Assembly (NCBI RefSeq): GCF_001194135.2
Contig: NC_068987.1
Coordinates: forward strand, 54,008,196-54,072,195
DNA length: 64,000 nt
Source: Octopus bimaculoides
Taxonomy: Eukaryota
Reading direction: 5' to 3'
Part shown: positions 35,301-56,300 of the stretch, piece by piece
How the letters are laid out: each line of letters starts with the position of its first letter
Position numbering within the stretch: position 1 is the first letter of the stretch
The notes under the pieces: model-generated
What the model was told of the DNA's origin: nothing
The model's database searches: none
Seen by the model: the letters and a program-made list of their open reading frames with translations, nothing else
Translations under genes and position numbers: made by a program

Positions 35301-38300
35301 AACGTTAAAATTCTTTGAGCATGTAACATTAGAATCTATATTGATTTTAAACTATTTAAAAGTATAGTATAAATATTACTTTGTGCACCATTGAGTGCTA
35401 CGGAGCCACTCGCTTTCTTATGTGTTGGACACTAGTTCGGTTTTCAGCCCATCTGTTTCAATTTAATGTGCACCAAAAGTGTTGTGTCGACGCCCCCAGA
35501 CGACGAAGTAGGCTAGCCCAATACGTAGATATAGAAGGAGAAGTCTAGACGTCGAAGTAGTTGAGTAGAGGTCATCCGAACGTGTGATATAGCAAAAAGA
35601 CTATATGTTTCGACCGAAGCCGGCATTCTACAGAAAGCTGACATCTGCTTGAATGAATTACTTCCGATACTACATAAAAATAAAGTCTTTGATGGCGACT
35701 CTACGACTCATTTGGGTTTTACATAACATTCAAATTGTCACAGAATATGAGACCTAAGTTCAGCGCTACACATTGTCTATAACAAATATTCTTTGGGTCA
35801 TAACGGTCCAGCTGCAAACTTTAAATAGGTATCATGAATAGATTCGAATCAAAGCTGCAAGTACTGGGAGGAGCATAGGCAAAGAGTATTTCGTTCACTT
35901 TTAATGTTAATTTCAAGTTATCTTATTTACTTTAGTAAAACAACACCAGTGTGTTTTCCCATAATATACTTTGAAATTTGAAAGGATAACTAGTATTGTC
36001 GTAACGATATCTCAGATATTTTTGCAGTTGGGAAAATAAACCAAATAGTGAAATAAATATTATCTCTTTACCATAGACACATTCTATTTGATTCTTTAGA
36101 ATATACGTGATATATGATTTTTTTCTGAAATAGAAATCTAATTTTTCAGTCATAACTTGTGTGGTTTACTATAACTGATTTTCTTTTAAAGTCCTAAAAC
36201 TAAGCATTCGATTTAAACACTAACTACAAAATCACTGCAGATAGTTTTTGTTTTTAGTTTTTTCATTCTACATGTGTATTCATAGGCTACAAAAAAAACA
36301 AGAAAAAACACAACACCTGGAAATAAAACCAAACTCAGACTATCTACAACTACATATGCAAATATTTAACACAAAAATAGGAATGAAACAATTTTAATTG
36401 AAAGTTGGTGGGCGGAAAAAAGATAAGCAAGGATGAATAGAGAAAAGTCGGACATGTTTTCTCTATGTCTACAAACTACATTTTGTAGTAATCAGTCTAA
36501 AAAAAAGTCGAACTTACGATCCGGTTCCCTCATCGCCACCAGTTGATCTGTAAATAAACACAACTATTATATTCAGCAACAGTAACAATAACAAAACAGC
36601 GAGAACAAGAGATACATCAGCAACATTAAACAATACTAAAAGCAACATTTAACTCTAATAATATCTGCAAAATAATGCGAAAAACCTACGACAGAGGTAC
36701 GGTTTTCAGTTCCATAGACTTTCGTGTTTTTTGGGTTTTTTTTCTTTTGTAGAATAGATATTTCATATTCATGAAGTTCATCCAAAAACCATAACGAATA
36801 ATAATAGTATAAATGAAATAAAATACAAGTAAGCAACTTGTGAAAAATATTTCTTGATGAAGTCGCATTAGTGGTTGTAAAGTAACATCCAAATTCTAGA
36901 ACGCAGCGTTAATTTCAAATTGTATATTTGGATAATTCCTTATTCAAGATACTAATCTTTTATTACCTTATCTTTTGTTATTAATATTTTTCATCAATTT
37001 TTTCTTGTTTTGTTTGAAATTTTGATTTTTCTTTTTGCTTTATTCTGTTGATATTTGAATTTTTTTAACTTCTTTTTGTGCTTTTTGAGGTTTTTCTTTT
37101 ATTTTCTTGATTTTGTTAACTATCTTTTTCAAAATAACTCGTGACGATGTAAATAAATAAGTAAATAAATAAAATCTGTTTATCTCAAGTACATGACAAA
37201 AGAAGAACTATACAAACGACCTAACTATCTTTGTGTCAATTTGTATATATTTTCTGTGGCTTTAAAGCACATTCTTTGCTTATGTTTTTTGGGGGGTTTT
37301 TTTGTATTTTCTTTTGTAGCCTTCAACCTCATTACTCTAACTAAGCATGATTCAGTTCCATCTAAAATTCACCCTCGTTATCTCAAAGTTTGCGACAACG
37401 TCTATGACATGAATAGAAATGAAAAGAAATAAGTAGGAAAATAAAATGACCAATATAAGTTACATTATACTTTGTCGAGAAAATAATTTTTCTGGTGTGT
37501 AAATGAATCTAGACAAGCAAAACAAAGAATATATATACGAAAAAGGAAAATAAGCATAAAGAGAAATCTTAAGTACAGAAAATGAGTGATATAATTAGTC
37601 TTGAACAGAATTACTAAGATTGCTAGAAAGAGTCTGTATCTATACATACATACACACATATATATATATATATATATAAACATTTAGACATTTTATAAAA
37701 TTCTAAAGGAAATGATTAAGAGAGGGTGAAAAGTAAAGACAAAAATAAATTCAACAAAATTAAGATTTTAAGATACATTATTCAGGTTAACATGCAGCAT
37801 CCATCTAGATAAAAAAGAAATAAAAGTAAAGTAAATAGAAAGTTATATAAAGACTAAAATCTACGACTGAAAGAGAAACGATTTTAAAATAGACAGATTT
37901 GCAACAAAGGTAGATAATCATACTTCAAGAACATTTCTTTCTATACTCATGAACTTGAGCCAACTTATATACAAGTTGGTTAATTTTTCTCACTGTACTT
38001 CTATAAGGATAATTTAGTACGGTTTGAACGAAATCATCTTAAAGCCAAATCAGTAGAATTTTAGATATATGAAATTCTATAAAAACGTAATACAAAGAAG
38101 AAAAAAGGCTAAAAATAGCCGTCTCGTTTGATTTATTGTCGCTTTTATTGATATCCTGTGTATTTATTTTCTCTTAAGTTTCTTATAAAACTTAGTCTAT
38201 CTACATTGCTTTACATTCTATAATGCCAACAACAATGACAACTGTTTTCTAATTTCCATTCTTAGTTACGATTGATATCACAACTATAGTTGACTGACAG

Positions 38301-53300: not shown

Positions 53301-56300
53301 CTTTACCAACTCAGAGAAAATGTATGACTAGTCAAATACCGTAAATCTCAAAACATTCATCAGAATTTTGTGAGGAGAGTAAAAACACTTCATTAATTTT
53401 ATGAGATGTGGAAACAACGTTGTTAGGAAAGAAAAATGGAAGTTGATTTCTGTTCATTTAATTGCAAGCAGGTAGAATGCAATTAATAATTCACCGTGGT
53501 AAATAGATAAATCGATGGGTAGATAAATATAAGCATGGGGATGGGAAAAAATGCAGTCATAGCAAGTAAACGAAACCTCATATTTTGAGAAATTACAAAA
53601 GCTCTCACTTACATGAAGCCAGATGCTGGAGACTCCCTATGAAAATGGCAGAATAATGCAAATTGACGTTTGATTTAATAGCAACTAAGAAAGCGGATTA
53701 AATTGCAATTTTTGTCGTTGTTATTGTTAAAAGAAGCTAATGTTATATAGTGTGTTGGAATTGTTAGCAGCATTGACTTCTTACTTTAATTATATCTGCA
53801 AAATTATTTTTCATAAAAACTAAATCAATAAGCTTATTATCGAAGACATCATTATTATCATTATTATTATAAATAAATTTTACAAGCAGCCAAATTGCGT
53901 AAAAGCAACTACACTCAAGCAATTTAATTACTAATGTCTCGACTAGCATCTATAAATTCATATTATAACAATAGACTAGAAAATTTAAATGGATGCAATT
54001 CAGGTCTTACAAGTGAATAAATATATAAGTAAATAACATGCACTGTCTTATTGGTTAGGAAAAACTAGATGACTACACAGAAGGTGATGTTTACTATATA
54101 TAATGTTTTAATTGAACAATATGGCAAACTTAACCTGAAAAGGAAACCTTATTTAACAAAAAAATGGTAGAAACGAATCTAAGTTAAAACTTGTAGACTA
54201 AGTTTGAAAACAAACCAAAACACAGTCTAAAAATAAGAGTTTGTAGTTGGAAGAAACATCAAGATTCTGAAAGAAGGAAAGTAGAAAAACAGAAAAAAAG
54301 ATTTCTATTAAAAGAAGAAACAGGAGAGATATATTATTCTTCAAGTTCATAAAGAAAGGAGGTAATTAATAAAAAGGAATGGATGAAATTAAGTCTTGTG
54401 AGTGTTAGTTGAGAGCTCAGGAGTCTATTAGCAATTCTTAAATAGTATATATATATATATATCTTAAGAGCTAACTTATAATTTAGAGATAGCAGAATTG
54501 TGCCGAGACACAATGTCAGATATGAGGTGTTGCTCCGTTAGGTCATAATCCTTGATTTTTGATCCGTTGCAGATAAATTCTGGCCACAATACTTAATTCC
54601 ACATGACGTCAGTTCATGGCTTCTGGGAATAGGTAATCTGCATAAGATTGAAGTCTTATTTAGAAAGATATGTTTATCCTATTCGCTTGATTCAGAAACA
54701 ACCGTTGAGCAAAAGAACTGTGGACAACTCTCTGGAAGTCAAACTCATCAAGTCCAGAAAATAAGTAGCATCAATTATTTGTCGACATGCTGAGTAAGTC
54801 AAAAGTCTTGGGGTTAGCTACCTTTTTATTTTTCATTTTTCTAAGTTAGACCTTTGACAAAAGAAAGTTACGTGGCATTTTGCTTAATTATTATCGTCTC
54901 TAAGTTATATGAAATGCATTACAACAAACTTCATTTACTTGTATGAGTTTTCTTCTCATTAGATCAGCCTAATAAAAATGTATTTATTTCCCAGTATACC
55001 GCTTCAGTAATTATAATTTAGTTGAATTAATTGTGTCACTCTCACTTCACGGTTTTACTCTTTTACTCAAAGATTGTTTCTGCAAGCTATAAACTTAATT
55101 ATTTAATTTTCTAAATAGAGTATTTTATAAAAAAAAAAAAGACTCTTAAAAAAATTCAATCAAACTTCCTCTAAAGAAAGTGCAGTCTTTTCCACGAAAG
55201 GACATTATGATCCAGAGCTTAATTTCTACATCTTAAGTTTTGCAATTACTAGATTAATATGTCGACCCTTGGTATAGATTTGGGTCTTTTATCCCCACTG
55301 GTATCCGTTTGGCCTAGTCGTTAAATGAAGTCCTGGGAAGTATTTATTTTCCAGTAGTGATTTCACTGTAAATCTGACAAACGTTTTAAACTACAATACG
55401 ATATTTTTCGATTTTAGCGTAATGATTCGATTCTATTATTGAAAACAAAAATATAGATTTACATTTTATTTCTTTTATGTAATATGTCTAACGATCAAAA
55501 TTATTTCTCTTTCGTAGCAGAATGATTTCTTTTTCTTTTGTTTTTGCTGTATCTAATTGTATTGTTTATTCTGTTGTGCTTCTTTACGTTTTTTTTTTTG
55601 GTTTGCTGTTTTTTTTTTTTTGTTTGTTTTTTTCAGATTTCTATTAAATCTTGATTAATTTCTTTTCAACTACATTATCGTCTGCAATTATTTTTTTTAA
55701 TATAATTTATTTCCTGAAAATTCTTTGTATGTCGATCTTAATATCTGAATTATGGTGGCTCACATACTGCAATCTTATTAAATAATTAATCGTATTAAGT
55801 GAATCCAAAAATAATAATTTTTGTGCTTAGTTATCACAGAAGATAAATTAATATTTCAAAATTATTCTTCCACTACATTCTTTCTCTATATCGATTGTTG
55901 TCGGTGTCACACATATACCATAACTAAAAGAATTGCATAGACGCGTGTAAGGTGAGAGGAAGAAATCGAACAATGAAAGTCTTTAAGATGGATTTTGGTC
56001 AAAACTGACTAAGACTAGAATAAGAAAACCATTCGTTAATTAAGCTACCATCCAAGTCAACGTGCATTTTGAAAGTGGTGAAAAAGGAGAGGATATCAAA
56101 GATTTCATCTATATTTCTATTACTATACTTACTCAGTCTGTTCCTCACTGTGAAAAAGAACAAGAAATTAAGAAAAAATGATTTTATTTAATTGCTGGAT
56201 ATATCAAAGAAAATACAAGAATTTAAACAAAAAATACACATTCAAAACGAAAAGGCAGTGCGAAAATATCTTTTAAAGACTTGGACTTAATCCTAATTCG

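Follow-up and report, generated by a model that had tools for sequence, protein, structure and literature searches.

A nine-cassette exon array encoding the N-terminal tail of troponin T in Octopus bimaculoides

The troponin T gene and its cassette exons

The stretch of Octopus bimaculoides DNA analysed here comprises 64,000 nt (assembly GCF_001194135.2, contig NC_068987.1, positions 54,008,196 to 54,072,195) and is referred to as the window, in which positions are counted from the first letter. Its minus strand carries a complete gene of 19 exons, assigned to troponin T (TnT) from the protein that it encodes, in which every junction is AG/GT. This gene was rebuilt around nine small cassette exons, m1 to m9, which sit between the first coding exon E1 and the 40-nt exon E11 and together contribute 237 nt or 79 amino acids to the N-terminus. 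With all cassettes included the coding sequence measures 1209 nt and specifies 402 amino acids; the product that skips all of them has 323. Isoform counts given for O. bimaculoides refer to RefSeq models decoded into cassettes, which cover 19 of the 35 current isoforms, namely 16 listed isoforms plus X1, X29 and X35. The cassettes are as follows:

56133..56147, minus strand: m1, 15 nt, -EEQTE-; in 13 of the 16 listed isoforms; by locus comparison the oldest of the array
53613..53636, minus strand: m2, 24 nt, -ESPASGF-; identical in O. sinensis, not found in Argonauta or cuttlefish
50476..50502, minus strand: m3, 27 nt, -QSTEETSQ-; identical in O. sinensis, Argonauta orthologue with 4 differences, all synonymous
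49638..49667, minus strand: m4, 30 nt, -ETVEEPAAP-; first of three tandem duplicates, identical in O. sinensis
46386..46412, minus strand: m5, 27 nt, -ETVEEHTP-; duplicate of m4 with an in-frame 3-nt deletion, identical in O. sinensis
45581..45610, minus strand: m6, 30 nt, -ETVVEPPAP-; third duplicate, 2 differences to O. sinensis; in 2 of the 16 listed isoforms and in X1
41435..41461, minus strand: m7, 27 nt, -ETTEIPSN-; paralogous to m8 and, at greater distance, to m3, 3 differences to O. sinensis
40544..40570, minus strand: m8, 27 nt, -DTTEDPST-; candidate cassette, based only on an older RefSeq model and the O. sinensis orthologue
36518..36547, minus strand: m9, 30 nt, -STGGDEGTG-; orthologues in O. 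sinensis and Argonauta (STTAEEGKG)

The length of each cassette is a multiple of three and each is of phase 2-2, beginning after two bases of a codon and ending with two. Upstream of each lies a stretch of 60-80% pyrimidine followed by AG, and the donor is GTAAGT for m1-m3 and m7-m9 and GTAAGA for m4-m6. Reading of the sequence confirmed all of these positions, phases and boundary signals as listed in the original prediction for nine exons of 15-30 nt, and the 79-residue full-inclusion peptide given there matched the rebuilt gene exactly. Enumeration of inclusion and skipping yielded 512 distinct proteins, and none of the 512 combinations contained a premature stop, in agreement with the claim that all are translatable. 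Over these combinations the N-terminal segment spans 20-99 residues with a net charge of -6 to -29, which bears out its predicted acidic character, and the pI of the whole protein falls from 6.18 to 5.06. The strictest cut-off for microexons is 27 nt; six of the nine cassettes (m1, m2, m3, m5, m7 and m8) lie within it, and m4, m6 and m9 measure 30 nt.

The window was scanned mechanically for segments of 12-36 nt (a multiple of three, stop-free in phase 2) between AG and GTAAG, with at least 60% pyrimidine upstream; this returned 10 matches on the minus strand, which were the nine cassettes and one AT-rich segment, and a single match on the plus strand. In 500 dinucleotide-matched simulations of the 23.9-kb E1-E11 interval the mean was 1.7 matches and the maximum 8. 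The tenth minus-strand match was considered as a further exon (54011-54046, minus strand, 36 nt, QCMLFTYIFIH) and rejected, being AT-rich, hydrophobic, contained in no isoform and in keeping with the chance rate. Within 200 nt of the cassettes there was no TGCATG (Rbfox) site and no clear enrichment of YGCY. An excess of YCAY and (TG)n near cassettes was confined to the duplicated flanks of m4-m6, which are not independent observations. An Rfam search of the window gave no match.

The assignment to TnT was predicted and is upheld by several comparisons. The protein matched the Pfam Troponin domain PF00992 with 41.3 and 44.3 bits (cut-off 26.2). In a PDB search the top chains were cardiac and fast TnT (E = 8.7e-12), the best troponin I (TnI) chain reached 1.6e-6, and the protein core was collinear with residues 95-258 of human cardiac TnT. 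Gastropod and bivalve TnT share 57-66% identity across up to ~80% of the 402-residue query, and the nearest database proteins, orthologues included, all carry the name troponin T. Because of the Troponin domain and the better, collinear match to TnT than to TnI chains, we identify the gene from its sequence as troponin T. By analogy, the product of the gene body would bind tropomyosin, TnI and troponin C (TnC). The exons that frame and follow the array are:

57601..57620, minus strand: E1, first coding exon, coding part only, ATG GAC GAG GAA GAC CAT AC = MDEEDHT-; donor GTGAGT, ends with two codon bases, the same in all decoded RefSeq isoforms
33682..33721, minus strand: E11, 40-nt constitutive exon (-SFEGADEAKVKME), phase 2 to phase 0, shared acceptor of every skip
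20164..31019, minus strand: E12-E19, conserved gene body with the Pfam Troponin domain, 100% identity to RefSeq proteins
30903..31019, minus strand: body exon E12
29615..29701, minus strand: body exon E13
28736..28885, minus strand: body exon E14
26018..26227, minus strand: body exon E15
23594..23634, minus strand: body exon E16
23219..23263, minus strand: body exon E17
21302..21338, minus strand: body exon E18
20164..20388, minus strand: body exon E19, with the stop codon

An acceptor, ttcag/TTGTTGATAGCG..., was seen ~30 nt before the ATG (window 57621-57652, minus strand), and the exon continues upstream of the E1 coding part (TTGTTG...). As the E1 exon opens at an acceptor, there must be one or more non-coding 5' exons, and also the promoter, still further upstream, perhaps past the gaps at 58-61 kb. 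At the other end of the gene, a perfect GTAAGT occurs inside the last exon at 20302-20307, in frame (phase 0) after ...DLYEK, at the point where the oyster isoforms X4 and X18 split into alternative C-termini. The site may serve as a donor, either latent or alternative; every octopus model continues across it. Two assembly gaps (runs of N) lie within TnT introns, at 24403-24939 and 31714-32557, and further ones at 5614-6048, 58058-58329, 59527-59584, 60108-60924 and 62640-62720. The O. sinensis locus is gap-free and has the same exon set, so that seemingly no coding exon is hidden in the gaps. Elsewhere in the window, positions ~8000-16000 (e.g. 12296-12886) have a G+C content of 0.36-0.39 compared with ~0.30 and contain overlapping open reading frames on both strands and a fragment that resembles a retroelement; Pfam gave no match for the two long open reading frames at 12.3-12.9 kb.

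Isoform models of the locus

The 402-residue protein with all nine cassettes is exactly RefSeq XP_014770761.1, an older model of 2015 named 'troponin T, skeletal muscle-like'. In current RefSeq the O. bimaculoides isoforms run from X1 to X35 and those of O. sinensis from X1 to X49, and the models of the locus are XP_014770761.1 and XP_052825606-XP_052825651. With the 402-residue protein as query the best matches, 'troponin T, skeletal muscle isoform X9 [Octopus bimaculoides]' followed by 'isoform X10 [Octopus sinensis]', stand for clusters of 36 and 51 sequences, respectively. X35, X34 and O. sinensis X10 were not among the recorded gene products, where only the longest product per gene is stored.

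All 19 decoded O. bimaculoides isoforms consist, residue for residue, of E1, a subset of m1-m9 and the remaining gene. X1 (393 amino acids) contains all cassettes but m8, X29 contains m1 and m9, and X35 is the skip-all form. The X1 locus in GCA_001194135.2 (CM046607.1:54027359-54066815) is identical to the window across 39,457 bases. All 14 readable O. sinensis isoforms likewise decode as cassette subsets, ranging from X1 (all nine, 402 amino acids) to X49 (none, 323 amino acids). Thus, the predicted alternative use of the cassettes is found in the gene models of both species, which are computed models.

The decoded O. bimaculoides models contain 24 junction types, permitting 43 paths, and 31 of 55 conceivable types occur in both species together. 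The models follow a pattern of contiguous cassette runs and then a jump to m9 or E11, which does not resemble independent choices, and no mutually exclusive exon pair was found among the octopus models. Use of the individual cassettes is uneven: m6 and m7 are found in 2-3 of the 16 listed isoforms, and m8 in none of the 19. For m8, six guessed combinations containing it had no match in the protein collection, where it was found only in the older all-in model XP_014770761.1; in O. sinensis, 4 of the 14 decoded isoforms contain it. It may be that m8 is rarely used in O. bimaculoides.

As to the suggested large isoform repertoire, tens of isoforms are annotated; as a repertoire, 512 is overstated. 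It is an arithmetic ceiling and no estimate, because the 24 junction types allow only 43 paths, the models are run-like, and mouse fast TnT, for all its larger combinatorial space, has just 13 N-terminal isoforms that can be detected (PMC11016001).

The array had also been held to be invisible to annotation based on open reading frames. This is wrong, since the exact protein has been in RefSeq from the first O. bimaculoides release on and the current release is combinatorial, with X1-X35 and the X1-X49 of O. sinensis built from the same exons. The array is already known in public gene models and is a known kind of feature, not a discovery; its architecture is that of a textbook TnT, a lineage-specific instance of the classic N-terminal variable region. 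That it is undescribed in cephalopods, as proposed, may hold for the literature and does not hold for RefSeq, where the locus is already modelled: a full-text search of the open-access literature found no description of N-terminal splicing in cephalopod or molluscan TnT. Therefore, a short comparative description is probably new to the literature and would not surprise a specialist. The nine-microexon array could be recovered from raw sequence without error in coordinates, frame or peptide, and the presence of its exact product in RefSeq since the first annotation is the reason why a claim of novelty needs a database check.

Conservation and duplication of the cassettes

Orthologues of all nine exons are present in O. 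sinensis with equal length, phase and AG...GTAAG boundaries, and frame is conserved at this orthologous locus. Between the two species none of the 123 nt in m1-m5 has changed, compared with 9.7% of the aligned positions in the intron flanks (P ~4e-6), and even at half the flank rate this outcome would have a P of ~2e-3. Hence, m1-m5 are under purifying selection. The 3 differences in m8 are all nonsynonymous, and its AG, GTAAGT, length and frame are kept in both species.

In Argonauta hians the introns no longer align, and short aligning islands are centred on m1, m3 and m9. Four cassettes were found there, which are m1, m3, one ATEEDSSE exon and an m9-like exon. The six substitutions that separate m1 (2) and m3 (4) from their Argonauta counterparts are all synonymous. 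In the cuttlefish Acanthosepion pharaonis (L003) the 11-kb E1-E11 intron contains the m1 orthologue only (14683-14697, EEQT, 15 nt, AG/GTAAGT). By these comparisons m1 is at least as old as the split between octopus and cuttlefish; m3 and m9 are common to Argonauta and therefore older than the Octopus-Argonauta split. Comparison with the Argonauta and cuttlefish loci did not reveal m2 outside Octopus.

The likeness among m4, m5 and m6 reaches at least 300 nt downstream, with 76-86% identity in the first 100 nt against a background of ~53-55%. The m7 and m8 exons share 78% identity and little similarity in their flanks, and m3 is a more distant relative. Both sets, m4-m6 and m7-m8, are evidently tandem duplicates, found only in Octopus. 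The intronic blocks common to the m4-m6 duplicates lie downstream of the exons, at 49338-49637 (m4), 46086-46385 (m5) and 45281-45580 (m6), with shared sequences such as TTTTTTTCCTGAAAC and CCTGCTTTTCACTATT. They contain a C/A-rich, YCAY-dense stretch, and (TG)n and (TA)n microsatellites are located just upstream of the exons. These blocks may either remain from recent duplication or serve as a splicing element.

None of the matches outside Mollusca carries the cassette peptides, and orthology of individual cassettes to vertebrate or insect exons was not found. The likeness to vertebrate and insect TnT is one of architecture, not of descent of individual exons.

Some observations on deposited TnT records can be added. 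The deposited 433-residue A. pharaonis TNNT3 model (P0126; L003 10001-38461) skips the m1 orthologue at 14683-14697 and has an unrelated C-terminal extension of ~90 residues from an extra exon (38186-38458), which is probably a mis-join. Decapodiform-type TnTs from squid- and cuttlefish-like transcripts (P0124, P0125, P0127-P0130) have 23-43 residues before AEYEE and an (EEAPA)n-like C-terminal tail of 79-101 residues; in octopods the C-terminal tail has 58-64 residues (compared with window 20164-20388) and up to 114 residues are N-terminal. The two coleoid lineages thus have comparable acidic, E/A/P-rich sequence at opposite termini of TnT. The record 'hypothetical protein V6M80_12265 [Enterococcus faecium]' (P0007), on a 1399-nt contig, is a 301-residue TnT of molluscan type with ~65% identity to the octopus core; here, contamination of a bacterial assembly by animal sequence is almost certain.

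Interpretation and comparison with known systems

We are confident that the N-terminal tail of this TnT is encoded by nine symmetric cassettes which are alternatively spliced and form a lineage-specific version of the TnT variable region. Each cassette has its own acceptor and a donor, GTAAGT or GTAAGA, of near-perfect complementarity to U1. Symmetric phase 2-2 together with own splice sites means that inclusion or skipping keeps the frame. In skipping, any upstream donor may be joined to a later cassette, to m9 or to E11. The products share one identical body, predicted to bind tropomyosin, TnI and TnC, and only a Glu/Thr/Pro/Val/Ala-rich tail, judged from its composition to be probably disordered, varies in length and charge. 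As in vertebrate and insect TnT, this tail may modulate thin-filament regulation, with muscle type or developmental stage selecting the isoform. Within the Octopus lineage, tandem duplication (m4-m5-m6 and m7-m8) very probably enlarged the array from a starting set of m1, m3, one m7/8-like exon and m9 that is still visible in Argonauta and of which only m1 is common to cuttlefish.

Several points weigh against this interpretation. The XP_ isoforms are computed models whose full-length combinations were inferred by chaining junctions; therefore the models do not establish the real number of isoforms or the independence of the cassettes. Furthermore, m8 is missing from every current O. bimaculoides model decoded (19 of 35). 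In m6-m9, 10 of 114 nt differ from O. sinensis, mostly nonsynonymously (7 nonsynonymous, 2 synonymous); this is indistinguishable from the flank rate and therefore points to weak sequence constraint on the distal cassettes. Finally, the proposed function is borrowed by analogy from vertebrates and insects, and in the classical view molluscan muscle is under myosin-linked control (PMC2226187).

One doubt about the exons themselves, that they are chance splice-like motifs in AT-rich intron DNA, can be regarded as refuted. Such motifs do arise by chance, as the extra AT-rich match at 54046-54011 illustrates, but nine coherent matches against 1.7 expected, exact public proteins and conservation at orthologous loci leave this explanation practically no room. 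It is also very improbable that every one of the nine exons is constitutive and that automated annotation created the isoform diversity as an artefact. The XP_ models are predictions and the first RefSeq release had a single all-in protein; however, 35 and 49 isoforms were derived from the same cassettes in two independently annotated species, N-termini in Argonauta, cuttlefish and squid-like transcripts are shorter, with or without an EEQT of the m1 type, and oyster and abalone models show the same cassette behaviour.

Two further explanations, both of which we consider possible and rather unlikely, accept the exons and concern their use and effect. The array may be real and partly used, m8 and perhaps m6 and m7 being rare or decaying in O. 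bimaculoides, so that the working array would comprise five to eight exons. This would fit the absence of m8 from all 19 current isoforms and from the matches to the six guessed combinations, its presence only in the older all-in model, the occurrence of m6 and m7 in just 2-3 of 16 isoforms, and the near-flank rate of change in m6-m9 with its 7 nonsynonymous and 2 synonymous changes. Against it, m8 keeps its AG, GTAAGT, length and frame in both Octopus species and occurs in 4 of 14 O. sinensis isoforms, and the count for O. bimaculoides covers only 19 of 35 current isoforms. Alternatively, the exons may be real and the tail not tune Ca2+ sensitivity, acting instead as a passive acidic spacer or local Ca2+ buffer or being of little consequence. 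A buffer has been proposed for the avian Tx segment and the Glu-rich C-terminus of insects (reviewed in PMC7581897), the octopus tail is acidic and of low complexity with weakly constrained distal cassettes, and the similar E/A/P-rich stretch at the C-terminus of squid- and cuttlefish-type TnTs suggests that bulk charge outweighs position. That m1-m5 are unchanged between the Octopus species, and that m1 and m3 differ only synonymously from Argonauta, argues in contrast for sequence-specific constraint on the proximal cassettes. Taken as an alternatively spliced variable region, the array divides into cassettes under constraint (m1-m5) and cassettes that evolve fast (m6-m9), and the history of its duplications is clear.

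In cephalopods the muscles take the form of obliquely striated muscular hydrostats, and how thin- and thick-filament regulation are balanced in them is debated; for this reason a TnT tunable by splicing would offer a tractable point of entry. If the octopus tail is tuned for each muscle (arm, sucker, mantle, heart), this would be an undescribed lineage-specific diversification of thin-filament regulation in muscular hydrostats. We tentatively propose, as an idea that may well prove mistaken, that coleoid lineages placed a similar E/A/P/V-rich acidic extension at opposite ends of TnT, octopuses at the N-terminus with up to nine splice-selectable cassettes that arose through recent tandem duplication of exons from an ancestral set of up to four, and the squid/cuttlefish type as a fixed C-terminal tail of 79-101 residues combined with a short N-terminus.

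In TnT, the variable region at the N-terminus does not bind partners directly; its length and acidity modulate conformation, tropomyosin binding and Ca2+ activation, and alternative splicing switches it during development and from muscle to muscle (PMC11016001, PMC7581897). In vertebrate fast skeletal TNNT3, exons 4-8 and the fetal exon are, like the octopus cassettes, small and frame-preserving and are located between the first coding exon and the tropomyosin-binding region. The cassettes of the two systems share no sequence homology, and the octopus array is larger, with nine exons, and rich in Thr, Pro and Val as well as acidic. One TnT gene in octopus does the work of three vertebrate paralogues, and regulation and function, demonstrated in vertebrates, can only be presumed for octopus. 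To our knowledge, the octopus array is among the larger sets of N-terminal cassettes in a troponin T gene.

Within molluscs, models of Crassostrea/Magallana gigas (X1-X18) and Haliotis spp. resemble octopus in having E/T/V/P/A-rich cassettes after a conserved MxDEExH start. Among the RefSeq isoforms of oyster, the variation lies in the cassettes EEITDA, PEEVTFVAAPVAPTP and EVTPTEQNEQ. In contrast to octopus, the oyster has about three or four cassettes, which cannot be aligned with those of octopus, and alternative C-termini as well. The RefSeq models of the octopus locus itself are identical to proteins derived from the window and make use of all nine exons, with m8 absent from the decoded isoforms of the current release.

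Insect TnT (Drosophila upheld, dragonfly) is, like that of octopus, encoded by a single gene with several spliced N-terminal variants, and in dragonfly these are linked to muscle Ca2+ sensitivity according to PMC11016001, which cites Marden 1999 and Cao 2019. Unlike the octopus models, insects have a pair of mutually exclusive exons, 10A/10B, together with a long C-terminal extension rich in Glu (PMC13322953). [quoted passage not shown] They differ in that the avian exons encode metal-binding His/Glu repeats and are included as a block, whereas the octopus repeats have no His clusters, with a single His in m5, and are included singly or in runs in the models. If tuned by muscle, the octopus case would have counterparts in the avian P exons and in the C-terminal tail of insect TnT, and a splice-tunable octopus TnT would widen a principle that is already well known and introduce no new one.

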